Source: Klebsormidium nitens (lineage: Eukaryota; Plantae; Klebsormidiophyceae). From it: 64,000 bases of DNA. Positions 1-63,300 of the stretch are shown here, in pieces. The position numbers and the translations under genes are program-made. The stretch spans positions 1 through 64,000 of the forward strand of contig DF237329.1 in the NCBI GenBank assembly GCA_000708835.1. Reading direction: 5' to 3'. The notes beneath the pieces were generated by a model, which worked only from the letters and a program-made list of their open reading frames with translations, did not search any database and had not been told where the DNA came from. Positions within the stretch are counted from its first letter, which is position 1; every line of letters begins with the position of its first letter.

Positions 1-963
1 ATGACCATAGACTGATCAGGATTCAGTACGTGTAACGTGCGCCCGGACTTGGCAACTCCCTTTAATCTCCTGAGGGGCTTGTCTGTGAAGATTCAGGGGC
101 CCGGGCGATCTCAACCAATACCCCTAACCCAACAGATTACCCGCTTTACGGCACCCTTATTGAGCTAACCCCCGCGCCAACCCTGCGCGGCCCCCAGGCT
201 GTGAAGCTGACTCGGAGACAAACAGCACAAGCCCATCAGGGGAGACTTGAAGGGAGTTGCGCCAAAGTGGATGATGCCCGGTGATAGTACAGGTGTCCGA
301 GTCATCCGATGAGTTCTCTCGATTTCATGTTGACCAAGCGCCATGTGTTGACTTCCCGGAAGCTGTCTCGGGGTATCGTTAGCTTGGATTCGCGGGTTTA
401 GGGCGGGTATGGCCGGTTGCGAGGCTTGTCTTCTCAAGGTTTACACTTTCGGTTTCGGCCTTTCCCGAGCACGAACCTCTGCGAATCACAGTCTGGTCAA
501 CATGAAGTCGGAAAGTACCGTATCCGTATACGTGTCTTACGGCATTACTGGCCAAAGTTGAACCGAACCTTGGCAGCTGCTTCCGACTTGCCTAGACGAA
601 GGTAGACGTCGAAGTCAGAGCAGTTCTATAGTAGAGAGCCGAACTTCACAAGCTCCCGGCCCTCGGTTTCGGATGCTGACTATAAAGCAGCAAGCAAGCC
701 AGCATTTCAATCCAAGCCACTTGTCTGAACTTGCCAACCAAAGAGCTACCAGCTCGCACTTGCTTCAGCTCAATCCTAGCCCCCAGACCGTCTTACCACT
801 TCGCATCACGGAAATCCAAGCAGCCCAAAAAGCGACCTCCTACTTGCCTTCTCGTTCCCAGCCCCCAAACCGTCTTACCGCTTTGCAACCACTGTCGGAA
901 CATTCAAGCAGCCCAACGCCCCCAAGCATCAACCCCCCCTAACTTCCTGTGCGCCCAATCAAC

Positions 964-3900
964 ATGGGCACCCGCGGCGGCCAGCACTCAGTGACTTTGG
1001 CGACGCTCCTCCTGCTGTGTTTCCTCGGGGGATCCCTCAAGCTCACCGCCGCTCAGCAGGCCCCCGGCCCCGCGCCCGCCTCCGGGCCCACCCCGGGGGG
1101 ATCCCCCCAGCTCACCGCCGCTCAGCCTCCCCCCCCCACGCCCACCTCCACGCCCACCCCCCCCTCCGTATACCTGGACCCCGAGGGTGTCTGCCCCGAC
1201 GGCCCCGACGCGTGCTTCGCGCGCTTCAACGCGAGCTTCCCGAGGGCGTTCAACGGCAGCTCGGAGGTCGCGTACCGGAAGGGCGTCTTCTACGCAAACG
1301 TCCAGCTGATCGACGCCCGCAACCGCGAGAACCGCTCATACACGCTCGCAGTCAACGAGTTTGCGGACTTGACGCACGAGGAGTTTATCGCGAGCTACAC
1401 GGGGGCGGTTCCCCCCAGCGACGGAAGCGATGGGTCCGGCAGGCGGCTTTTGAGGGAGAAGAGGGGTTTTGCGGGTGCGGCGCGGCGCTCGTTGCTCAAC
1501 CTCCCGTCCTCCGTTGACTGGCGCACGACTGGGAAGCTGCAACCAGTCCTAAGCCAGACCTGCGGTGAGTGTTGTTTGGTTTTCGCTTCTCTGGTTACTT
1601 GGGGGATCACCTCGCATCTAAGAACTTTACAATAGGTTGATTTGGTGGCATCCAGCAGGGTGTTATCGATGGTACTTGACTGCACCCCCTAGCTAAATGA
1701 TATGATGTTTCCAATTGAAGCAGGCACCTTGATTACGACTACTCACAAGAAGAAAAAGTCTGAGCTCAAACCCCCTGTTTACGGATTCATGTGTTCTCAC
1801 AAAACCACCTCTCATTATGAAGGGCCCTTGATTATGGTCGACCCGAATGTGGTCCTCAACCCTATCCCTACTCAATCACAGAAAGCCTTCGCCCTTAACC
1901 AAGTCTGGATGAAGACAGTGAACCAGCTATAAACCCAGCTCCGCTTGGTAGAAGGCAACTTAACCAACCACAAACCAAACCCACAAATCAAACTTGCTCA
2001 ATCAAGGTTCCCATTCAATCCAACAGGGACCTGCTGGGCGCATGCCGCTACCGCCGTACTTGAGACGACGTTCAACATCGCGACGGGGCAGTATGTCAAG
2101 GGCTCTGAGGAGGAGATGATTGACTGCTTCCCTGAAGAAGCGGGAACAAGCTGCTCCGGGGGCGGGTGGCCTGGAAATGCGATGGATTGGGTCAAGGCGA
2201 ACGGCCAAACGACGGCGGCAAAGTACCCTGCCGTCTTTCACGCCGAGAAATCCATCAACCCGGCCTGCGACGCAGCAAAGGTGAGTGCCCTGTCCGGGTA
2301 ATGTGCTGGTCGGCATAGCTTATGAGCAACAGAGCTCTCTTTGCAAGCCGCTCAAAATTTGCACTAAGCTTTGCGGTGATCACCGAGCCTTCCGACAGGT
2401 GTTGTTACACTGCTCTTTAAGTACCTTTTGAGTTGTTATAGAGTAGGAGTAAGAGTAAGGGAGTTCTGAGTCGTAAGTTGTCGTTCAGGAGTTTTAAGAG
2501 ATGAAGGAGCCCCCTTCGGTTGTGCCGCCTCGCATCTGAAAAGCTCAGCCTTTCGTGCTGCTCTTCGCGTGCGCCCACAAGAGACGTGCCCAAAGGGAAG
2601 CCTAGAAGTCGTGTTACCGAGTACTGACGCAAGACTGCCTTCCCCTTCCTGCAGAGCGCCAGCGATGACATCACGGTCGACTACGTGTACCACCTGTCGC
2701 AGCCCTCGGAGGACGTCATCAAAGAGCAGCTCGTCAACGCCCCTGTCGTCGTCCTCTTCGCAGTCGGAGACGACTTCCAGTTCTACTCAAAGGTGAGCCG
2801 GCGCGTGATCCTATAATGGTGTCAGAGTCGAGCTGGTGTCAACAGGTGGAAACACATTGAGTTGTGTTGAACTGTACTAGTTAACCTAGGTTGTTGACAC
2901 GATAATCAGGGACTTACCCCTCACCTCATTTACGTTCTATGCAAGGCTTCGTGGCTCTAGCTTTGCAGATATGGCAGGTTTGCGACGTTGCAGAAAGTGA
3001 TACTCAAAATCAAATGCGCTCGTGCGGATTTTGTCAAAGTGGCCCGTGCTCGTGCGCCCATTTCTGATTGCCCGTTCACACCCGCCCGTTCACACCTGCC
3101 CTTTCCTATCCCTCCGTTCAATGCCGTCTGTGCGCCCCCCCGGCCTTTTCACACACGCCTGTTCCCACTGTTCCCACGCGCCTGTTCACACTCTCCCCTT
3201 CCACTGCAGGGCGTCTTCGACGGGCCGTGCGATACGACCGTGGTTATCAACCACGCGATGGCCGCCGTTGGATACGGTTCCGAGAACGGCGACGACTTCT
3301 GGATCGTGCGCAACTCGTGGGGCGCCACGTGGGGCGAGGCGGGGTACGTGCGCATCAAGAGGGGGGTGGACCAGCCGTACGGCCTGTGCAACATCCAGTA
3401 CCAGATCGACTGGGCGACCAAAAAGGGTGAGGCGCAATCACTAGGGGGAGTTTACTTTTAACCAGATTAAGTCGCATGGGCTGCAATGAATTGTTTTGAA
3501 TTGCTCAGGGAGTGATGGGTGTGATTTTGTTTGTTGGGCGTCAGTCTTGGCGCTTGCATCTGTATGGAAGCAAACTACTTCTCCGTCTACCCTTGTGGTG
3601 AAGTCGATTGCAAGGGAGCTGAAAGCAGATGAGATCGAATATCATCCAGTGCACGTGCTTGTTTCTTGCTTCATCGGGTCTCTATTGTGTCAGTGAGTCG
3701 GACTACGAGAAACCCTGGAAGGTCCAAAAGCAGCCGAAGCAATCTCGTCGCTGAGCAACGATTCTTTTGCGTGCCGAAAAACGTGCTGAACGCTGACGTG
3801 TGCTCCACGTGCAGCTCAAGGCTACTGCCAGCGCAACAACCCCTGCCAGAACAACGGACAGTGCATCGACGGGGGATCAGCTACCTCCTTCCAGTGCAAC

Positions 3901-5041
3901 TGCGTGACTCCTTACGAGGGGACGTACTGCGAGAGAATGCAGACTCCAGGTCAGCAGTCTGCGAGTCCCCATTCCGCCATTAGTAATTCGTCGACTGCTT
4001 CTTTTGAATTGTTCTATCTGACTTCTCATTTCTTCCCAGCTGAGTCGATGTCCATATATAGTCCTAGTGTCCGCAATATAGGCGGACCAGTATCCGCCCT
4101 TATTGCCGTTGTCTTTTGCCTGCTGGTTTGCGAATCAAAAATTCCTCTCTTCCATGCGCGCGCGCAAGAGAGAATTGAAAAAGACGTGCAAAGACGCTAC
4201 TTTAAACAGCTGCTCACGCAGATTTGATTTCCATTGCAGACTGCTTCTCCGCTAGCGAGTGCGACTTCTACTTTGAAGGATACCAGAGCTATGTTCCAAC
4301 CCTGTATCTGGGCCCTGGAACCGGGGACAACAGCATTAGCCCAGCTATCATCAATTCCAAGTGAGCGGAACAAATTTCAGTCACCTCACTTGCTCGACGC
4401 TGGTTCTCTAATTTGAGGATTTGGTCTAGCTTCGAAGTACCAGAGTAGACCCCATCCTTCCACACTCTGATGCGCTGTGAAATTCGATATTCAGTATGTT
4501 CAGAAACTGAAGGCATGTAGTCGTTCTTTCTCACAAATGCGCAAAAGCTAGGCGAAAGGATGAGAAAAAAAGTTGAAACCAGAAACCGCAAAATGGATGG
4601 CGCCCTCGGGCATCGGACAATCTTCAGAGTAAAACTGGTCCCTCAAAACTTTTGATGACACAACGTCCTTCGGCGAAGGCAGTTTAGTTGACGACCTGTC
4701 CCGAACGACGAAGTCCCGAAATCTCGAAGAAAGCTTCTCTAATCAAGGGATCCCCCTCTTTCAGGGACGGCGGCCAGCACGTCAACGTGATCAACACGAA
4801 CCAGGGCTACGGCGCGTACCCCCCCATTCCGAACGACAACCAGAACCAGTTCTACGGGGGGGGCAACTTCGTGCGCGATCGCACCTTTAACAACCCCCAG
4901 AACGTGAACGACTTCCGCGGCAAGTGCATCAAGCTCCGCCTGTCCAGCGTACAGCTGTCGGACGGAAACAACCTCAACCCCAACGACGGGAACGGGCAGT
5001 ACCCGGAGGAGCGCCGTTGCGTTGCTTTCAGAACCGCTTAG
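964..5041 (+). CDS. Secreted papain-like cysteine protease (C1A) with I29 prodomain, EGF-like module and unrecognised C-terminal domain; ~580 aa
   Basis: Exons 964-1564, 2027-2280, 2655-2792, 3210-3426, 3815-3949, 4240-4360, 4765-5041, all GT-AG with consistent phases (1743 nt). Signal peptide, Pro/Thr-rich spacer, ERFNIN/GNFD-like prodomain ([20 protein letters not shown]; AVNEFADLT), catalytic motifs QTCGTCWAH, INHAM, RNSWG. Exon 5 reads [35 protein letters not shown] (EGF-like six-Cys spacing). Confidence 0.88.
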
Positions 5042-6719
5042 GGAATTGGGCGGTGGACGTGAGAAATTGGTGTGTGAATTGTAGAGTTCCCGCCGCATTT
5101 GAAGCGGCTTAACTTATATTGGTGGTTTTGAGAGATTTGACTATTGACAGCGGTGTGTGTGTCGGATGTTGTCTCCGTTTCGAAAGGAAACGGGGCCTAG
5201 GTTGCAGGATAGCGATCTGATTTTGTTCGATAGAACATTGACATTGCCTTGTATGATGGGAAAAGAGGTCCGGTTTGTGTAATCCCTCGTAGGATGGACA
5301 TCTAGGACGCAATAAACGTAATGTCGCCTGGAAAGTGAATAACGTGCTAATGGTCCAATCTAGGTACGTTTACGAGTCATAGAATGGAGAATCTAGGAAC
5401 TTCGCAACAACATTTCACACTGGAAGTAGCCCTGGTACTATGTAGCTGATACGTTTTTAATCATATATTTAGATCATATTTTCGTACGGTATGATCGAAA
5501 AGATTGACCAAGAAAAGGTTGACCATCAACCAAGTGGCAGTAAGTTTGGGAAAGGAGGCACAATTTGAACTAGAATCAGAATAGCCGCATGAGGGAACAT
5601 AAGCATTGATATATATGCTGGATTTGATTTACTGCTGGACGAGCTTTTCAATTTAACATTGTATTAACATACAAGTTTTCCGAACGTTGTTTTGAGCGGA
5701 GTCAACCCTACGCTCCGGCACAGATCATGACAAGAACATGTAAATGCGCATACCATGAGTGAATTTTTCAAATGCCCGTGACACACTGAAGGATCAGATT
5801 CCATCATTGCGAGGAGCTGAGATTCAATGATTGCATGAGAGCTGAGAACTGAGAGCAAGCTCAGAGAAGAGGCCCGGGTCGAGGTACATCTCTCAAAACG
5901 CTGAGTGGGACGACCTAGCTGCTGGCCGCAAGGTGCCAGTGACTAGGCGAAAGCAGGCTTGAGGCTGTCTACCACCACACAGACAATAATTCTCTACATG
6001 GGAGCCCGTTCACCGTCACTTTGCTGGATATAGTGATGTAGATATGGTTTAAATTTTGCGGTACCTAGCCGCAGTATGCTTTTTAAAAAAGTTCAAGCTC
6101 CATGCATGCACTTTTTCTACATTTCGGGAAGAATTGCGAGCTTGACTCCGGTCCCGTTTCATTCATATTTGATGATGCGAGTTGCAACGATGTTTGCAAC
6201 TGCTCATTGGCAATTTAATCACAACGATGAAAGGACTGAGAAGCCGGCCAGGTGTACTATTTGTTATTAGCTTGCTGCATCGCGCAGGCTTTCAACTTTA
6301 TCAAAAGTTGACAGTAGCTTTCGTATAAGGCGGTTACTTTTGCAGTCGGAAGGCTCGGGACTGCAAACCCCTCTCACCAGATGCACTCAGATAGACAAAA
6401 CGTGATATCATTCTAAATCTTGGTAGCAACGCACCGTCGCCAGCATTTGCCAAAACTAAATGCATGTTGATAAAAGTTGCTCGGGTCTGCATCAAGAAAT
6501 TGGTTTGCTAAATTGTCGTCTGTGCTTCGCTATTTGCCTCGCCGGAATCGTCCATCTCATGAAACACCTGCTGCTCGCCAACGCCTGTCAACACGAGTCT
6601 CGTGTTCCTGCAAATTGCTCAACTTGCTTGCGTGACATACTAAGAAGTGCGATGCCAAAGTACAGAACGAACATCCGAAAGCCCAGAGTGACCCACAAGC
6701 TTTCTCAGCCTCCGTCGCT

Positions 6720-9700
6720 CTACTCCACCTTCAGCGGCTTGATGTTCCAGATCTCCTCGGCGTACTGCTTGATCGTGCGGTCGGAGGAGAAGACGCCGCT
6801 GCCCGCCGTGCTCATGATGGACATCCGGGCCCACCGGTCCTGGTCAAGGTACGCCTCGTCCACCTTCTTCTGGGCCTGCACACGAACGCCGCCGTCATGC
6901 TGACGTCAGCATCTCGGGGAAATGATTGCCGCCATCATGCTCACGTCGGCATTCCGCTGCTTGCTTCCCCAGACTTCAAGACGAGGTAATTGCCGATTCC
7001 GGGGTTTGGACCACTCGGCATGGGCGTCGGGTGTCCTGGCGGTTGGAGGTCTACGGCGCAGGGCTCGTGATGCGACAAGCCTTTCAACTCGTCTGATATG
7101 ACGATTTGGTATATACACTCATTGAAAGCACATTCGAAGTCTTCGCTCAATCCAAAAACATTAGTTGCGCTTGCCTTGGTATCTCTGTTCAAGCAAACAA
7201 TTCACAACGGAAATGCTCAACTTGCCACATGCCGCGGAACAAGCCCATTTTACCGCCCACCAACAAAAGATGACGAAGGGCAAGCGATCTGGTACAAGTG
7301 ACGGCCGCAAAAAGCGGTTGAGACGGCGCTGCCAGTCACTTACCCACGACCACAGTGTTTGTCACCAGCCGCTTACCAGAAGGGCACGCCACAAGGAGGA
7401 GGAATGGAGAAACTTAGCCGGATTATATCTCCGCTAGCCCCTTATCAAAAGAGCACCCGAAAAGAAGGAAAGACTAGAGGCACAACGCAAACACGATCAA
7501 AGGAACCAAACACAGAAGAGAAAGATAAAGAGATAATATAGATCTAGCAAGAAGCTTACCTCCAGATAGGTCGCGAAGTCCCGGCCGACCAGGAAATAGT
7601 CGCCCCGCCCAAAGCCGCTGTTGCCCTCCAGCGAGTCGAGCAGGGGCTGGTAGTCGTAGTCGCCGAAGGCCTTGCTGCGGACGAAGTCGCACGCCTCCAC
7701 GAAACGCGGGTCGGGCAGAAACTGCAGCGATACGAAGCGGTGAGTTGAATCTGACTCGAAGCGGGGCCTTTGGATTTGGTGTCTTTGTTGAATGCTTTTA
7801 TTCGGACCGATGAAAGGTTCTAGCTACACACTTCGTTCTATACCTACAAGCACCTTGCTGTACACTCACGTTTTAAGATACTGCCAGAGTACCCTCTCTT
7901 TTAAATCCTGCCCGATCACGACAACGTCAGGTTCGTATCTGCGGCGCGGTATTCGAGTTCCAGTAACCAGGAGCCCAGTAAAGCAAGCAGCGAATTCGAT
8001 GTGGTTGCACGCGCTTGCAGCGTGCTGCGCCGGGCAAGCGACAGACCCGACCACCGGCGCACCGCTTTGCACTGTCTCACAACCGGCTTTACACGACTGC
8101 GTCTCCAGAAACCATGCGGAAATGCTCCGTACTCTGCACAGCAATTTGTGTGAAACTTGCACCGGCGATGGGCCTGGATTTCTCGGTAACACAATCTTGG
8201 ACCGCGCGATCCCCTCTGGACACCGATCGGACGGTCCAAGATCATACCAAGCAGGTTTCGATTCGCGCGAGGGTTGCCATTCCAGACAAACAGCCGTAGT
8301 AACGCTTCCTTACCTTGCCCTCCTCTCGCTCCTTCCTTGCAATTGGCACCTCGTCTGCCGTGATCCCAAATAGGAAGAAGTTCTCCTCGCCGACCTGTTC
8401 CCGGATCTCCACGTTGGCGCCGTCGAGCGTGCCGATGATGAGGCAACCGTTGAGCGCGAACTTCATGTTGCTCGTCCCGCTGGCCTCCATGCCCGCCGTG
8501 CTGCGGAGCAGACACGTCAGCACACGTCAGCAGAGGCTACGTCAGAACCGCGCCAGCACGTCAGCAGAAGCTACGCAGGCATCGGCTTTGCAAATCGGAC
8601 ATCAAGCTCTGATGTCTTCTAGACTAGGGTTGAAGAAGCCGATGACTCCGCTGCGATGCTGGGTGAAGGCGGATCGCATTTCAAGTGACAGAACCCATGG
8701 AAGGAGAACGTGGACTCCAGTTTTCGTTCTGGACCCCCACACTGCTTGGTACCCCATGCGCGCGCGACCGAGCTGGCTGGTTACAATCAACGTCACCCGG
8801 TCTCTTGGTCCCATGCCCGGGGACGCGGAACTAGGTCTATGTACGTCTATTTGAGCCCTCGGTTTGAATTCAATCGGCCGGTCGAGAGTAGGTAAACAAG
8901 GTTACCGGTAATACGCGTGTGGCAAGTGCCGCGGCAGCCTAGCCCCCAGCTGCTCGCGCATAGGTATACCAACCAGTGTGGGGGTCCAGAATGAAAACTG
9001 GAGTCCACGTTCTCCTTCCACGGGTTCTGACAGAAACCTTACAGCTCTCGCAAAAATTGATAATTACATGTAAGCCGAACAGCGCGGACTCTGTCGGGAA
9101 TCAGGTAAACAGCAGGACCGCAGAAACGCCAAACTTGCCTGATGTGCTGTGAGAGCTCGCTTGCAGGGATGGCCGTCTCGGCGACCGTCACGTTGTAGTT
9201 GGTCAGGAACACCACCTGAAAGGGGTTCAATTTCGGTTACATACGGGTTTGCGAGACCCGATGATTTGACAGACCCAGCTTGACACGAAACGAATGCCAA
9301 TAGGAGAGGCATGGGACTGTGCTCGACAGCTCGCTCTCAGAACACGGGAGTGTTGATTAGCTTCCGAGAAATCCACCTGAATCTCTCGCAATGAGCTTAA
9401 CGCAGATTTCTTGTCACTTTTGAGAAGGAGCTGATTGCTTGTTGGCCCACAACGGCCGGCCAGGACAAAAAGAACATCACCTCAAATTCGTCACAAATAG
9501 GATGAGCAAGACCCTGCTACTTTGAGGCATACTCAGTCCTTGACGGCGTTCAGAAGCGTCTGGCCAGGATGGATTGCCTTCTGGGTTTTCACTTTAACGG
9601 ACCGTTAACCCCAGTGCAAACCAACTCCTAACTCCCTCCCTAACTCCCAACACCCTCACCTTGAGCAGGTCCCCAATCTTCGCGTCGTTGTTAACCACGG

Positions 9701-30412: not shown

Positions 30413-32644
30413 TCAGCTTCCATCAACGACAAGTTTACACCCTGCTGTCTTATTGGATTTGTTTCTTATCGTTTCAGGCAGATCTAGCAAAGCACTGCAA
30501 CCTGTCAGGTCCAACGCTTGGAGCTTAGGCCACTTCTCTGCACATCCGGGCAAGTGATGTAGGTTGTCACAACTTCTCAGAACTATGGTCAAGACCTCGC
30601 TCCAGGAACTAATAGACTCCGGAAGGGTAGTCAGCCTGCGGCACGCCTGATCGTCGACGCCAACTTCAAATGAAAATCCAAAAAAATGGTTCGTCCGAGG
30701 AAAGACGCCCGCAGGTATGGCCGCCAACACGCAAGGCCCCAAAGCTACGAGCTTTACGCTGGTCCAGTTCCCTACACTGTCAGGAAGCCTTTCCAACTTA
30801 GAACACAGCAACTGAACATACTCTAGTTGCTCCCAGGCACCAACCGTATCTGGCAGCGCTACCAACTCTGGCCCATGCACGACGAGAGATCTCAGATCCT
30901 TCCAAGATGCAACTGCTACTTCTGGAAGCCTCTGCGCCAGCAGATGCCTGACATGAAAGCGGGTCAGCTTCGACCAGTTCCGTGCACTTTCTGGCACCTC
31001 CGCTACCCACTCAAACTCCACGTCCTCTAGGTTCTGCCAAGCTCCCACCGCCAACGGCAGATCTATCCGTACAGGGTCGCGCGTCCTAGGAGTCAATTGG
31101 AAGCTACGGAGCTGCTTCCACTCACACACCTCTCGAGGAAGCGTCACTAAGCGCTCGCAGGATCTGATATGGAGGGTCTGCAATTGCTTCCACCCTCTCA
31201 CTCCGGAAGGCAGGGCGCACAACTTGCTGCAGTAAGAGATGGTCATCTCCTGAACCAAACCCCATTGGTCAACGCACTCTGGAAGGAACTCAATCTCGAC
31301 GGCACGGAGAGTGATGTTCAGAAGCGCGCCCCAGAAATGTCCCTTCACGGTCTTTGGGAGTAAGCTTTTCAAAGTTGAGCTCACAAAGTCCATGGTTTTC
31401 TCGGGTGCTTCTTTAATCGAGAGTAGGCTCTTGAACCCCCGATATGTGTCCAATAAAACATCCTCAAGGGCGTCCCAACGGCGCCCCCCCTTCGGCAAAC
31501 GCTCAAGCTTATCGCAAAAGCTTATAGACATTTTTCTCAGATTTCTCCAGCCATGCACGTCCTCGGGTAGCGTTTCCAGGGTGCCACATTCTTCCAGCCA
31601 GACTTCCTGCAGTCCTGTCCACCCCTGGACGCCCTCAGAAAGGTCCTGAAAACTAGAGCAGCGCCGTATACTCAATTTGCGAAGCCCCTTCCAGCCCTTT
31701 ACTTCTACAGGGAGGCCGGAGAGCAAAGGGCAAATCTCTAGCTTCAAAGTTTGCAGGCTGCGCCAAGCGCTGACTTGCGAAGGGAGCTTTGTCAGGCTGG
31801 AGCACGAAGACAAATGCAGCTCGCGCAATCGGGACCACGCGTTCACTTCTGGAGGCAGCGACTCAAGCTTACTTGCACCATGCAACCAAAGAACTTCAAG
31901 CTTGTTCCAAGCACTTACGGTAGGAGGGAACTGGTGCAGATTGGCACAAATGTGTCTGGAAAGGTTGGGAGACCCTAAAGCAAGTACCTTCAAGTGTTTC
32001 CAGCTTTCAATCACGCCTGGCAAACTATCTAGGTCAAGATTTTTGATCTGAAGATGCTGCAGGCCGGTCCATTGCTTGCTTGCAAAGTGAAGGTCGTCAC
32101 AGTGCGCGAGAGTCAGATTCTTCAAGCAGGTCCATTTTGCAGTCCCAGCTTCTGACAGTTCTCCAAGAACCAAGTCACCACGTAGAGCAAAGCTCTCCAG
32201 CCACCCCCACTTGAAGATCAGCTTTGGCAATTTTACAACTCTAGGTTTCTGACCAGGAAGATGGTCTTCGTAGTAAAAGCTGATCTCTAGGTGCTTGATC
32301 CGGAGGGAGGTCTTATCTGCAAAGCTCAATATCTTCTCACAGTGTACCTCCACAGCCTGCTTGGAAGTATCATCCAGCACCAGATGGAGGCTGTCTAGGC
32401 AGGGAAAAAGATTGAAGCGCCTTCCCACTTGTTCAAAAGTAGGTTTCTCTCCGAGTTTGGGCCAACAAATGGCAAGGCTTCTGACTCCTTCTCTCCCAAC
32501 CGAACGCCACTGTTTGCACACTCCACTGAAAATCTTCAAGGATGTCGTGGCGTAAGGTCCTTTGTCGAGAAGACTTGCTATTCGAACCAGGAGCTCCCTT
32601 GGCAAGATGTCGTTGATGCAGGGTGCTCCCTCCTGGCAAGCCAT
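30413..32644 (-). CDS. Intronless F-box + leucine-rich-repeat protein (~24-aa LRRs with conserved Trp), 743 aa
   Basis: Single 743-aa ORF. N-terminal F-box-like segment INDILPRELLVRIASLL...FSGVCKQWRSVG is followed by more than 20 repeats of LPxxVxxWxxLxxLxLxxCxxL. Confidence 0.88.
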   Translation of the reverse strand: MACQEGAPCINDILPRELLVRIASLLDKGPYATTSLKIFSGVCKQWRSVGREGVRSLAICWPKLGEKPTFEQVGRRFNLFPCLDSLHLVLDDTSKQAVEVHCEKILSFADKTSLRIKHLEISFYYEDHLPGQKPRVVKLPKLIFKWGWLESFALRGDLVLGELSEAGTAKWTCLKNLTLAHCDDLHFASKQWTGLQHLQIKNLDLDSLPGVIESWKHLKVLALGSPNLSRHICANLHQFPPTVSAWNKLEVLWLHGASKLESLPPEVNAWSRLRELHLSSCSSLTKLPSQVSAWRSLQTLKLEICPLLSGLPVEVKGWKGLRKLSIRRCSSFQDLSEGVQGWTGLQEVWLEECGTLETLPEDVHGWRNLRKMSISFCDKLERLPKGGRRWDALEDVLLDTYRGFKSLLSIKEAPEKTMDFVSSTLKSLLPKTVKGHFWGALLNITLRAVEIEFLPECVDQWGLVQEMTISYCSKLCALPSGVRGWKQLQTLHIRSCERLVTLPREVCEWKQLRSFQLTPRTRDPVRIDLPLAVGAWQNLEDVEFEWVAEVPESARNWSKLTRFHVRHLLAQRLPEVAVASWKDLRSLVVHGPELVALPDTVGAWEQLEYVQLLCSKLERLPDSVGNWTSVKLVALGPCVLAAIPAGVFPRTNHFFGFSFEVGVDDQACRRLTTLPESISSWSEVLTIVLRSCDNLHHLPGCAEKWPKLQALDLTGCSALLDLPETIRNKSNKTAGCKLVVDGS

Positions 32645-33538: not shown

Positions 33539-35894
33539 TCACGGTTGAACACAAATGTCTACACTTGCACCAGATGCAACTTTTTCCTGGGTTTTGTATT
33601 GCTCAAACGCTGCAGTGACGGCTTCGTTGCATCCACTGAGCAGCAATGTGACGTCTGGATTTTGAAGAGGCCAGGTCATCACGGAACTGGGAAGCTCTGT
33701 CAGACTGATGCAGCCTGACAACTCAAGTACATCAATCTGGGACCATTCTCGTACAGTGTCAGCAGGCAGGCGAGTCAAGCTTTAGCAGCCGCTCAGGTCC
33801 AGTATTCTCAACTGCTTCCATGCTCCCACGGACTCTGGAAGGGCGGTCAGGCTGATGCACGGCTCGAGGCCCTCGACCTGATGCGTTCTTCCAAGTCCCA
33901 GAGAATAGAGAGCTTGCCAATGACCTACGCTCTCAGGCAACGCCCTCAGGGACCGACATCCACTGAAGGGTACTTGCCAGATTTTCCTCCACTGGCCGAC
34001 ACTGTCCGGGAGTGACTCCAACTTCGGACACGACAGCTCGATTGACTCTAACTGCGTCCAGGAGCCTACCGATGCTGGTAGGCTTTGAAGGTTTGGCCCG
34101 GAGACGTTCAGATTTGTCAGGTTTGTCCAAGCTTGAACCGCCTGCTCTGGAAGCTGCTCCGCCTTCAAAGCTTTGATACTAAGGCAGATCAAGTTGGACC
34201 ATCCTCGAGTGCTTTCGGGGACACTTTCCAGTCTCCCTATAGAAATCTCTTGTACGTTCACCCAAGCACCGACCTCCACAGGAAGAGTCGTCCAAGCCAA
34301 GGTGCTTTCGTCACTCTTCAGCTCGATTTTCTGGAGCTGTTTCCATGCGCCTACTTCTTTGGGCAGCGTCGATACCAAAATACAATCAGCGATGTAAAGG
34401 GTTCTCAAATTCCTCCATCCTTCTACACCGGAAGGCAAACCCCGAAATGAGGCGCAGCCAAAAATGGTCATCGTTTGGAGGAGGCCCCAGTGAACTACTG
34501 CTTCTGGCAAGGATTCGAGCTCGGTGTAGGAAAGTGTAAGATGCACTAATGCCCCCCAGAAGCCCACTTCCTCTACATTTGAGTTCAAGCTCATTGTTTC
34601 TCTCACTGGGTCACTAGGAGCTTCCTTCAGTAAGCCTTTGATTTGTTTGTTATTGCCCAAGCAAACCGTCTCCAAAGAGGTCCATTGTTGAACCTCTTCG
34701 GACAAGTGCCTAAGCTGCCCGCAATGGCTGATGTTGATGCTCTTGAGCTCAATCCAACACTTGGGAAGACCTTGTAAGTTGTAAGGCGTCACAGCTGTTT
34801 ATATAGACATCCTGCAACTCCCTCCATCCACCGACACCCTCAGAAAGGCTGCGAAAGCTAGAGCAGGAGGACAACACAATCTTACGCAGTCGCTCCCAGC
34901 CCTCAACTTGCGTAAGAAGCCCGGGGAGTCTCACGCAGCAGCTCAGATTCAAATCTTGCAATGACTTCCACAGTCCCACCGAAGGGGGAAGCGCAAGCAG
35001 GCCGACATCTTCGAGACTTAAACTTTGCAAGCTGTGCCAAGCCCCTACTTCTGTTGGGAGCGCTTCGAGACTGGGGCATGATCTCAAATACAGCTTGCGC
35101 AGCTTGGACCAGGATTTTACTGCTGGTGGAAATGAGTGAAAGGAGGGTGCTCCGCTCAGGCTCAGAACTTCGAGCTTGTTCCAGACACCTTCGAAGGAAG
35201 GGAAGCTCTGCAGCTTAGAACAAGTGCGATTTTGTCCCAAGGCCCCCCCCAGTTGCAATGTTCTCAGATCCCTCCACATTCCAACGGCGTCTGGAAGCTC
35301 TTCCATGTCGAGCTTGTCCACTTTGAGGACTTGCAGGCTCGTCCATTGATTGCTAGCCGGAGGAAAGGCGTCGCAATAGGTTAGAGTCAGGCTTCTCAGG
35401 TGGATCCACCTTCCCATTCCGGACATGCTTCCAAGAACAAAAGCATTCCCCAGAGCAAGGCTCTCAAGCCAGTCCCAACGAAGAATGGCGTCTGGCGTCG
35501 CACGAAGTGGAGATGCAGGGTAGTAAAGGCCAAATGCTAGATGCTTGATGCGGACGGGCTTCTGATCAACAGAGCTTATTACTCTCTCAGATACCTCTAA
35601 CGTGGTCTGGTCCTGCGTTCGCAGATGAAGGGCATCTACGTAGGGAAAGAAGCGTAACAATCTCAAGACATGCTCTTCTGCATCCCCTCCATGAAGACTG
35701 CAGTTGATCCATAGACCCTTAGCTGCTTCTCGTCCGATTGAGCGCCACTCTCTGCAAACTTGCATGAAGCTCTCCAGACGACCATACTTTCTGTTGCTGG
35801 AAGGCTGATCTGAGACTAGAAGTCGTCCTATGTGAGTAAGTATCTCCCTCGGCAAAGCAGAGTTGATGCACGGTGCTGCATCCTCGCAAGCCAT
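33539..35894 (-). pseudogene. Disabled tandem paralog of the F-box-LRR gene (frameshift plus in-frame stop)
   Basis: ORF pieces 35894-34749, 34792-33782 and 33778-33539 are colinear with the 743-aa paralog (start MACEDAAPCINSALPREIL). There is a ~2-nt deficit near 34770-34790 relative to the 24-aa LRR register and a TAA at 33784-33782 in DLSGC*SLTRLP. No room for introns at either lesion. Confidence 0.8.
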
Positions 35895-60380: not shown

Positions 60381-63300
60381 ATGTTGATGATGGAGAGCAT
60401 GCAGATTAGGCCCTTTTCAGAATCAGGCTACCAGATGGCGGCAGCTTCGGAGGATGTTTCCGCTGTTTCGTTCGAGCATGTCCAAGGCCTGGTACCGCTG
60501 ACTGAAAGGTCAGCAGCAGAGCTGCTGGCTGGTTCCGCGGTGCAGACAGGCTTGAGCCGCCATGTCTTTGGAAGCATCGCTGTGATCATGGAAACCTTCA
60601 AGATCTTCGAGAGCGAGCAAGAGCTACGAAGACACCCAGATGTGCAGGGGGAGTGGCTCCTGAGGATTGCAGAGCTGATGCATGTCATCAGGCATCAGCT
60701 GTTTGAGGTCAAATTTGCGCTGGGACAGAATGAGAGAAAGCTTCGTCCCCTTGCTGAAGAGCTGGATCGATTCAACAGAGATTGCTTGACACGGGCTCGG
60801 AACATCCTGTCTCCTGCAAGCTACGAGTCCCTGTTTCAATCGCGCCATACATTCCCTTCGCCAGAAGAACAGTCCCAAAGAAACCTGCAGCTGAGAGAAA
60901 AGGTCGCACTCCTGGTTTCGGAGGGGGACTCTGCTTCTGGAAGTGGCTCAAGGCAAGGTTCGAGTGAGACTGAAATCAGGAAGCTTCGCAAGAGGGTGAA
61001 GGAGCTTGAGGAACAGCTCCGCGTATCAGAGGAAAGGAGAACAGCGGAGCTCAGGGAATCAGAAGAATCCAGAAGATCTGTCTCAGAAGAGAATGTTGAG
61101 TTGCAGCGGGTGAGACGTTCTTTATCTGCTTATAGAGTTGATCCCAATTGGCAATCTCTGGCCCTTTTGACTCTTCCAAAAGAGTGCCGAACAATCTGAT
61201 CAAAGTTTCCTGTTTTTCTGCTGGGACTCTTCTCATTCTCAGAAGAACATACCTGCTAAAATACCATAAGGCGTTGCAAACGGTTTCTGGCAGCTTCAAG
61301 TCTGGTCACTAGTTTACTGGTCAGAAAAGCTTTATTCCTGGATATCTCCGAATTGTGAGGGAATTTGTCTCGAGAGCCACGAAGCGTTGCTGTGCATTCA
61401 TTGTGAACCTTCGTTTGTTTGCATCAGAACATCATGCTGCTTCTAAGGTCCGGAATAACTTATTGTAGATTCTACTTTCTCATATCATGCAAACCAGGTT
61501 TGAGTTGAAGGAAAACCCTAGACAGAGGTTGTCTTTTGTATTTTTTGGTTTCATTGAATTTCAAAATTCAACTCACCCTAAGGGCCCTCGTTTTTCAACT
61601 TCACACATGCCGATCTTATCAGGGAGTCCCTACTCTTGAGTTGCGATGCCGATGGCAGGCATTCCTTAGCGGTTTGAACCTACTATTCGCAGACTGATCT
61701 ACCATCTGAAAATCATCTAGAAAAAATAGAGCCACATTCTAGGGTGCATTTGACGAAAGCTGAGCGCACGGAACTGGATTGCTTTGCCGAGTACAGATTC
61801 TTCAAACCAGTCAGATGTCCCTAATTTCAAATGCACCCTCTGTTAGAAACCTTGCTTCAGTTGTGACAAGAAAAGTACCACAGAACAACCATTGTTGCTC
61901 AACGCTGAAACAGGTCCTACTCCTGCATTTTGCAGACCTTGATAAAACTAGCAAATGAAACATTTGAAAAGAAAACGAAACTCCTGCACGTCTTTCAAAG
62001 CTGGTCTTCAGATATGCAAAGAGTCCCCTCTTGGCCTATCAATCTTCGCTTCTTTCTGAAATTCGATCGATTTGCAGAGGATTCAGCAACTTCAGGCCGC
62101 GGTGAATAGCTTCGAGTACAAGTCGAGCAACATGGAGAGCGTCGTCCTCGACCTGGAAGCGCGCAACCGGAAGCTTGCTGAAGAAGCCAGGGAGTCCCGC
62201 CGTGGCGGCCGTAGATCGCGCGCCAAGAAGACCGCCGAAGAGCCGTCCGCGGATCAGCCGCTCTCGCAACCGGGGTCCGCCGCTTCTACCCCTGGACACA
62301 GCGCAACCCGAGCTTCATTTGAGCTCCCGGGAGAGGCCAACCGGGCAGAAGAAAGTTTCTCAACTGACTTCACAAGACGGGGGTCTGCACGAGAGCCCTA
62401 CGACGTCCGCAACCTACAGATCGAGGGAAACAGAGGCTCTCGTCGGTCGGGCGCGCCGGAAGCAGATACTCGCGGGGATGGTGACGTCAGCAAAAACCGG
62501 GAGGCAGCCCCCGAGCCACGAGCGACCAACCGGCCCCCGTCCTTTGATCAGTCCTACAAGAAAACTGCACGGAACCAGAAGAGCCCGGCGGCGGGAAGCG
62601 TGGCGCTTGGACCGGTGGGGACTCCTTTCGGCACACCTGCAGGGGGTTCGCAGATGAGAACGCCTTTGGACGCGGTTCCAAACGGTTCGGATCGGTACCC
62701 ACCCAAGCTTGAACTGGAGCCCGAGTCAGAAGAGCCGGTGCATTTCGGGGGCCACGAACCGCGGAACGAGGCCGACACGTGGCACGACGACAATCCGCAA
62801 GGGGTGCACGAGAGAAGCCCACCAAAAGCAGCTTCATGGCAGCGGGGTCTGATCCAGTCGATCGTGAAGAGGACCCTTCCAAAAGAGCAGGTCAGCAGGA
62901 TGAGAAAACGGAGTGAGGCTTGTTGCCTCTTTTTGATGAGCAAGTTCAGCGGACATTTAGAATTGCTCAAGCGGGAATCTTTCACAAGTCAGCCTCCTTT
63001 GGGTTTTTCTCTCAAAAGTCTCTATCATGAAAGACACGACTCGCTACGTTTTTCATTGAAGTAATATTTTTTTTTCTATATTACACACTTCAGTGTTGAG
63101 GAGGTCTTTCAGATGTTGAGAATTGCGATGAATCCATGCAAGACAGCATTATCATTCTGTTACTCACATTTCTAGACTCCTGCTTTTCTAAGAGTAGGAT
63201 ATCCACTGTCAACAGTGGATATCCCTACAAGGGCGCAATTCAAAAGTCTTTCTTCGAACGCAGATAGCCCAAAGGCCGATCCGGCACTTTAGTAAACTCG

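Follow-up and report, generated by a model that had tools for sequence, protein, structure and literature searches.

What does a long intronless gene encode that joins an F-box-like head to leucine-rich repeats (LRRs) of a class known from plant immune receptors, and is its product likely to act in immunity? The question is raised by positions 30413-32644 of a 64,000-nucleotide stretch of Klebsormidium nitens contig DF237329.1 (the whole stretch is called the window here), where an earlier note had proposed a surveillance receptor built from an F-box and the solenoid of plant nucleotide-binding LRR receptors (NLRs). We followed up this gene, c1, computationally and favour, with a probability of roughly 0.6, the reading that it encodes a lineage-specific substrate-receptor subunit of an SCF (SKP1-CUL1-F-box) ubiquitin ligase, belonging to a birth-and-death F-box family. 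In the proposed mechanism, the F-box-like three-helix head would dock on SKP1, and the curved solenoid of ~25 repeats, broken by an irregular island at aa 399-437, would bind a substrate and present it to the ubiquitin-conjugating enzyme (E2) for ubiquitination. The family consists of intronless genes that spread by tandem DNA duplication and lose copies fast, by birth and death or by genomic drift. What the data show directly is the ORF, the repeat architecture with its W rule, the LRR class, the family with its narrow range, the pseudogenes and a purifying but relaxed selection; that the protein binds SKP1, that it leads to ubiquitination and what sort of substrate it takes are inferred.

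The gene is one unbroken open reading frame (ORF) of 743 codons on the minus strand, by far the longest in the window, followed by the two halves of its paralogue c2 (381 and 336 aa) and then by an ORF of 330 aa; because, the c2 halves aside, no ORF in the window exceeds 330 aa, c1 is not a chance ORF. A MAC(Q/E) start is common to c1, c2 and both proteins of L001, a contig from another alga. There is no intron in c1, whereas the neighbouring papain-like protease gene (943-3458) has four exons or more, in agreement with the earlier description of an intronless gene among intron-rich neighbours. A 300-aa model obtained from AlphaFold2 (AF2) with the family alignment had a predicted local distance difference test (pLDDT) score of 84.5 and a predicted template-modelling score (pTM) of 0.80, and the single-sequence AF2 model of the whole of c1 was unusable at pLDDT 48. 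The parts of the gene are as follows.

30413-32644, minus strand: intact intronless gene c1, encoding a 743-aa F-box-like / W-LRR protein; stop codon at 30413-30415
32480-32617, minus strand: F-box-like head, aa 10-55, with LPxE(L/I)L..IA..L, a 9-17-aa loop and L..F..VC(K/R)xW..(I/V)GR
32210-32479, minus strand: linker region, aa 56-145, predicted in the AF2 family-alignment model as three long strand-plus-helix repeats between head and solenoid
31451-32209, minus strand: W-LRR block 1, aa 146-398, 11 W-anchored repeats; modelled part (aa 146-300) at pLDDT ~80-96
31334-31450, minus strand: irregular island, aa 399-437, which breaks the solenoid; W spacing here is 48 aa
30416-31333, minus strand: W-LRR block 2, aa 438-743, 11 W-anchored repeats

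No part of the protein is better conserved than the head, the family being otherwise 26% identical. Ten DNA-derived members agree without exception at L, P, L, I, L, V, C, W, G and R, with a loop of variable length between the two halves, and the signature LPRE(L/I)L..I...L ... VC(K/R).WRS(I/V)GRE is common to c1, c2 and both L001 proteins. The Pfam F-box-like model matched 15 of 23 family members at E<=0.01 (best 2.5e-5), and a 50-position head profile aligned with the SKP2 F-box chains 1fs1, 1ldk and 1fs2 of the PDB in register, with one loop gap. Among ESM-Atlas features of aa 1-62, the nearest named clusters were all F-box (0.91). In the AF2 model, helices are predicted at residues 10-13, 16-27 and 36-55, and the first LRR strand begins at residue 56. 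Judged from these sequence comparisons, aa 10-55 are very probably homologous to the F-box; the F-box claimed in the earlier note thus stands as probable on the signature and the family-wide matches, but not as a match above the Pfam threshold.

Several observations weigh against the SCF reading. The Pfam F-box-like match in c1 (aa 13-49, E 6e-4) scored 19.9 bits and that at the same place in c2 18.4 bits, both under the 24.3-bit gathering cut-off, and the head carries the 9-17-aa loop insertion. The SKP2 match of the head profile is non-significant alone (E ~0.4); in the same PDB comparison a designed repeat protein scored better (E 0.093) and MED7 and PKG were marginal, these being the only other matches, and a 141-position N-terminal profile gave no meaningful match. 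The head is modelled with low confidence (pLDDT 48-72), and the Foldseek and VIA-align comparisons of the 300-aa model are dominated by the LRRs and so silent on the fold of the head. Neither c1 nor c2 has an entry in the public protein sets searched, an exact look-up of c1 being blank, and, with roughly every second sampled copy of the family broken, c1 may be drifting too.

Behind the head, AF2 predicts linker strands at residues 56-61, 85-90 and 118-123 and helices at 70-78 and 95-111 (pLDDT 68-95), after which the regular solenoid begins. c1 contains 28 tryptophans (3.8%), 22 of which open W..L..L.L repeats, the first at aa 146, with a W-to-W spacing of 21-31 aa (mode 24) and two larger gaps of 48 and 54 aa. 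A consensus from 156 repeats of 11 family members, WxxLxxLxLxxCxxLxxLPxxVxx, is the motif of the earlier note in another register. To tally the tryptophan, we used a regular expression that fixes the LRR core and leaves the position of the last residue of the NLR motif 'IGxL' free: family repeats have W here in 57 of 58 cases, and 329 repeats of NLR-type and other matches have L in 258 and W in only 5, which bears out the earlier claim of an NLR-style LRR with W for L. Because the same position is hydrophobic (L, M, F, I, C) in most of the 329 repeats of relatives, the tryptophans are probably core residues stacked as an aromatic ladder or spine, comparable to the Phe spine of 'typical' LRRs. 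A full-text literature search found no description of 'tryptophan ladder' LRRs. Tandem Repeats Finder detected no 72-nt periodicity at the DNA level; with the DNA periodicity gone, the repeats are old.

The solenoid is irregular in two places, the island at aa 399-437, which could be a hinge or a binding loop, and a second stretch at ~aa 650-680, inside block 2. At the position of the island, c2 and the family protein P0002 are irregular too, and the first L001 copy has no region matching c1 aa 380-446, which includes the island.

To which class do these repeats belong? Pfam matched c1 with LRR_14 (3.7e-17), LRR_4, LRR_8 and LRR_R13L1-DRL21, and LRR_13 (RPS4B-like) and LRR_RPS2 lay slightly under their cut-offs; the NCBIfam models XopL, XopAE and XopAC matched at 1e-40 to 1e-48, far under the family cut-offs and over the LRRs only. 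Ranked by sequence, the PDB matches comprised RPP1 (5e-21), SHOC2 (5e-18), Leptospira LIC proteins, Roq1, LRRD1, XopL (4fcg) and NRG1/ADR1, with no SKP2, TIR1, COI1 or FBXL chain among the 60 matches listed of 70 at E<=1e-3. A word search of 5.8 billion clustered proteins returned, as named matches, mostly plant coiled-coil (CC) NLRs (CNLs) of the RGA1-4 type, together with Closterium LRR proteins and one Xanthomonas effector, all at 22-37% identity. With the 300-aa model, Foldseek placed the XopL LRR (4fcg) first at 1.5e-8, followed by LRRC8, NRG1 and SHOC2, and COI1 only at rank 48 (TM score 0.29), and in VIA-align SHOC2 was the best structural match (Z 19-20, root-mean-square deviation 2.5-3.1 over ~200 residues). 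No Pfam match to NB-ARC, TIR, RPW8 or CC domains was found in c1 at E<=1. Because of these Pfam, PDB, word-search and structural matches, the c1 solenoid is placed in the NLR/SHOC2/XopL LRR class. 'NLR-style' is therefore right as to type, but the class is not specific to NLRs, and the earlier distinction from TIR1/COI1-type repeats holds.

Like the FBXL proteins (SKP2/FBXL1, TIR1, COI1), c1 has its F-box-like domain directly before the LRR solenoid, its head is in register with the SKP2 F-box, and its solenoid opens with long helix-bearing linker repeats; SKP2 is likewise built with long helix-bearing repeats after its F-box. By contrast, FBXL LRRs are of the 26-aa cysteine-containing type, to which c1, with a modal repeat of 24 aa, does not conform: the 24-aa repeats of its main solenoid are NLR/SHOC2-type and have a Cys ladder and a Trp core. 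It also lacks a significant sequence match to SKP2, TIR1 or COI1 among the matches listed, and the H1-H2 loop of the c1 family is the one that bears the insertion. Plant NLR LRRs (RPP1, Roq1, NRG1/ADR1 and the CNLs RGA1-4) have the same repeat class, LxxLxLxxCxxLxxLPxxIGxL, and are the best named sequence matches, but their identity to c1 is only 24-28%, c1 has none of their NB-ARC, TIR, CC or RPW8 domains, its 'IGxL' position carries W for L, and the concave-face hypervariability of NLRs was not detected in c1 orthologues.

SHOC2 and the Ras-group LRR scaffolds give the best superposition, and differ from c1 in that SHOC2 has Asn at the ladder position; c1 has Cys there, together with a Trp core, an F-box-like head and a narrow lineage range. 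The Xanthomonas effector XopL, Foldseek's top match, is of interest for its design, as it couples the same LRR class to E3 ubiquitin ligase activity (PMC4133400). However, c1 has no XL-box, its NCBIfam XopL match (7.6e-48) scores 163 bits against a 500-bit cut-off and covers LRR stretches only, and its identity to XopL and to Ralstonia PopC-type effectors is ~25%; the ligase link of c1 would go via the host SCF, not via an in-built catalytic domain.

c1 forms a tandem pair with c2, as the earlier note had described, and c2 is indeed a pseudogene, with its ORFs 34749-35894 and 33782-34792 in different frames.

33539-35894, minus strand: tandem paralogue c2, a pseudogene upstream of c1 in the same orientation, 38-44% identical to c1
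34772-34785, minus strand: c2 lesion 1, CTTACAA duplicated in tandem, which puts the frame out by +1; the 7 extra nt are absent from L001
33782-33784, minus strand: c2 lesion 2, an in-frame TAA where the L001 orthologue has GAA (Glu)

In addition to these two lesions, c2 has an in-frame 9-nt deletion relative to its L001 orthologue. Past the TAA, 80 codons remain in frame (33539-33781) up to a stop at 33539-33541. This tail holds a 'TWPLQ..D....LLSGC' C-terminal motif that is shared with L001 copy 2 and with a K. nitens paralogue ('EWPLHD'); the end of c1 differs. L001 (5,056 bp) carries both genes in the same order, with ~75% nucleotide identity in the coding parts only, and dS is ~1.7-1.9 between c1 and c2 and 0.5-0.96 between orthologues. 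Because L001 holds the same pair in the same order, c1 and c2 had already duplicated when the L001 alga split off. Both L001 copies are also broken, by lesions other than those of c2: copy 1 lacks the counterpart of c1 aa 380-446 and changes frame, and copy 2 is interrupted by a nonsense codon in place of a conserved Leu. Further broken members are L003 (frameshift), L008 (two copies with several lesions) and L009 (deletion and frameshift). With about half of the sampled copies dead, the birth and death suggested by the tandem pair is confirmed and extended to the family.

How far does this family reach? A HMMER search of 1.84 billion representative proteins with a profile of the first 141 positions gave 24 proteins at E<=1e-3, about 21 of which are genuine; P0098 and P0112 were rejected as unrelated repeat proteins. 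All full-length members have the same head and W-LRRs. The sole named member is K. nitens GAQ85897.1 (KFL_002600050), the others being ORFs from SRA (Logan), JGI and ENA assemblies, and the SRA run SRR23617307 contains at least seven copies on five contigs (L001, L003, L006, L007, L009). A word-index search with c1 aa 1-215 found P0001 only; when the query was an alignment of 12 family members, the matches were again mainly NLRs and the majority of known members went unfound, so that the search allows no paralogue count. A literature search found no paper on the family or its K. nitens gene identifiers. The family is small, confined to Klebsormidium and relatives, undescribed and fast-decaying.

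The K. nitens paralogue (L002:10001-12283, DF237209.1) is represented by a public 648-aa model with a predicted intron, but the locus holds an unbroken 760-aa ORF, blank in an exact look-up, that runs on into more W-LRRs and an acidic tail. Because the locus is one unbroken ORF, the annotated intron in KFL_002600050 is probably spurious and the public gene model wrong. The neighbours of this paralogue are intron-rich (584 aa over 8.2 kb and 319 aa over 4.1 kb), and the other intact members known as DNA (two on L006, one on L007) are single ORFs. Because the intact members, tandem pairs included, are single ORFs, the simplest reading is an ancestrally intronless gene that spread by tandem duplication at the DNA level.

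Other arrangements were seen within the family. A second tandem pair lies on L006 of SRR23617307 (3962-5656 and 6751-8562; 564 and 603 aa, same strand, both intact), and both of its proteins end in a conserved tail of the 'C.CP.LPYW / DWKH' type that c1 lacks. On the 232-kb JGI metagenome contig 3300060284, the L008 copies (3291-4782, minus strand; 6001-7952, plus strand) form a head-to-head pair, both broken by stops or frameshifts. In Closterium sp. NIES-68 (Zygnematophyceae), P0016 (CLOM_g12720) has an N-terminal F-box-like match, 'DDLPNDVLARIL ... VCRRWRRV' (E 8e-4), which is marginal and split by a long insert and is followed by NLR-class LRRs with Leu, not Trp, at the ladder position. 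Because P0016 combines both parts, the architecture of F-box plus NLR-class LRRs may be wider among streptophyte algae.

As an alternative to the SCF reading, c1 might be a dispensable copy, the not-yet-broken member of a neutrally expanding and decaying family. Between orthologues, dN/dS (omega, Nei-Gojobori NG86 method) was 0.42 and 0.26 for c1 and 0.36 and 0.21 for c2; selection on the family is relaxed but clearly purifying, and because this holds even for now-broken copies, their lesions are recent. We regard drift as unlikely. In its favour, different lesions have broken c2, the two copies on L001 and the two on L008, L003 and L009, omega reaches 0.42, and c1 is missing from public annotation. 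The pattern also agrees with the genomic drift to which Hua et al. 2011 ascribed a lineage-specific, tandem, relaxed and pseudogene-rich class of plant FBX genes (PMC3030570). The c1 family resembles that class in its tandem duplication, relaxed purifying selection, frameshift and stop pseudogenes and narrow range, and differs from it in its W-LRR recruitment module, its streptophyte algal host and its intronless genes (PMC3030570). Against mere drift, however, the 743-codon ORF of c1 is intact, omega lies clearly below 1 even in now-broken copies (0.21-0.36), and the LRR core (omega 0.16) and every compared W (26 of 26 repeats) are conserved between species at dS 0.5-0.9. An immune surveillance receptor, whose NLR-type LRR would recognise microbial or viral proteins and whose F-box would send them to the proteasome as an NB-ARC-independent defence, is distinctly unlikely. 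Its LRR class is common to NLRs, XopL offers a design precedent for coupling such an LRR to an E3, and tandem duplication, rapid turnover and pseudogenes are found in immune families as well. Hypervariability of the concave face is typical of NLR LRRs; in c1 and its orthologues, dN is nominally highest at concave-face positions (0.32 vs 0.24), but there is no excess of amino-acid changes there (83 of 192, vs 141 of 358 at other non-core positions; Fisher p = 0.41) and omega is 0.43 at concave-face x positions and 0.42 at other non-core positions (0.30 outside the repeats), in a crude, weak test with two sequence pairs only. The selection signature that the immune proposal would predict thus did not appear. 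Moreover, overall omega is below 0.45, the non-immune SHOC2 and LRRC8 use the same LRR class, and in Arabidopsis Hua et al. 2011 (PMC3030570) found no significant link between the comparable FBX class and responses to stress or pathogens.

There is little to recommend a scaffold outside the SCF, in which the head would be only an N-terminal cap and c1 would assemble signalling complexes like SHOC2. Such a role would suit the close superposition on SHOC2 (Z 20) and the sub-threshold F-box scores, but not a head that is the most conserved part of the protein, has the invariant LP and VC.W residues typical of F-boxes and is matched as F-box-like independently in so many members. The retroposition or horizontal origin that the earlier note had read from the lack of introns fared worst, and we give almost no credence to a retrocopy or a recent foreign gene of bacterial effector-like or viral kind. 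An intronless gene in an intron-rich genome and the low E-values of the Xop models do fit such an origin; however, those models match below their cut-offs and only in the LRRs, a tblastn search of plasmids returned only Ralstonia PopC-like LRRs at 25-26% identity, and a scan of viral contigs found none encoding a relative of c1. Likewise, no bacterial or viral protein with the same head and W-LRRs, or with >40% identity, was found. The GC content of c1 (0.52) equals that of its surroundings (0.51), there is no poly(A) tract 3' of the stop codon, with an AATAAA ~285 nt downstream, and the tandem pair predates the split from the L001 alga. An SCF substrate receptor remains our preferred reading of c1.

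Elsewhere in the window, the papain-like cysteine protease locus (943-4224, plus strand) comprises an exon for signal peptide and I29 propeptide, a catalytic-Cys exon and two further peptidase exons, with an EGF-like exon at ~3790-3950. Two long ORFs on the plus strand (60381-61199, 272 aa; 62072-63064, 330 aa) look like exons of one coiled-coil or low-complexity protein and have no Pfam match. An Rfam scan of the window gave nothing.

F-box/LRR proteins and their turnover are already well known. What is new is that an F-box-like head is joined to repeats of the NLR/SHOC2 class, that the Trp ladder is strict, that the family has a narrow range among algae and that its genes are intronless and arranged in tandem. 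In practical terms the gain is modest and consists of a gene missing from annotation, a corrected model of K. nitens KFL_002600050 and a profile with which to find the family. The immune reading is attractive, but only the LRR class and the turnover support it at present. It is a long shot that streptophyte algae wire NLR-class LRR sensors into the SCF, so that non-self would be degraded rather than signalled, in a defence pathway running alongside the NB-ARC NLRs; the W-LRR family of Klebsormidium would then be an example, and Closterium P0016 possibly another. The family provides a compact case of F-box birth and death outside land plants, with intronless tandem pairs whose orthologous copies acquired their disabling lesions independently in two algae. 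Should the head bind SKP1, c1 would represent a new F-box/LRR subtype with a Trp ladder, and the LRR class of NLRs, SHOC2 and bacterial effectors would also have been recruited, in an early-diverging streptophyte alga, as an SCF recruitment module.

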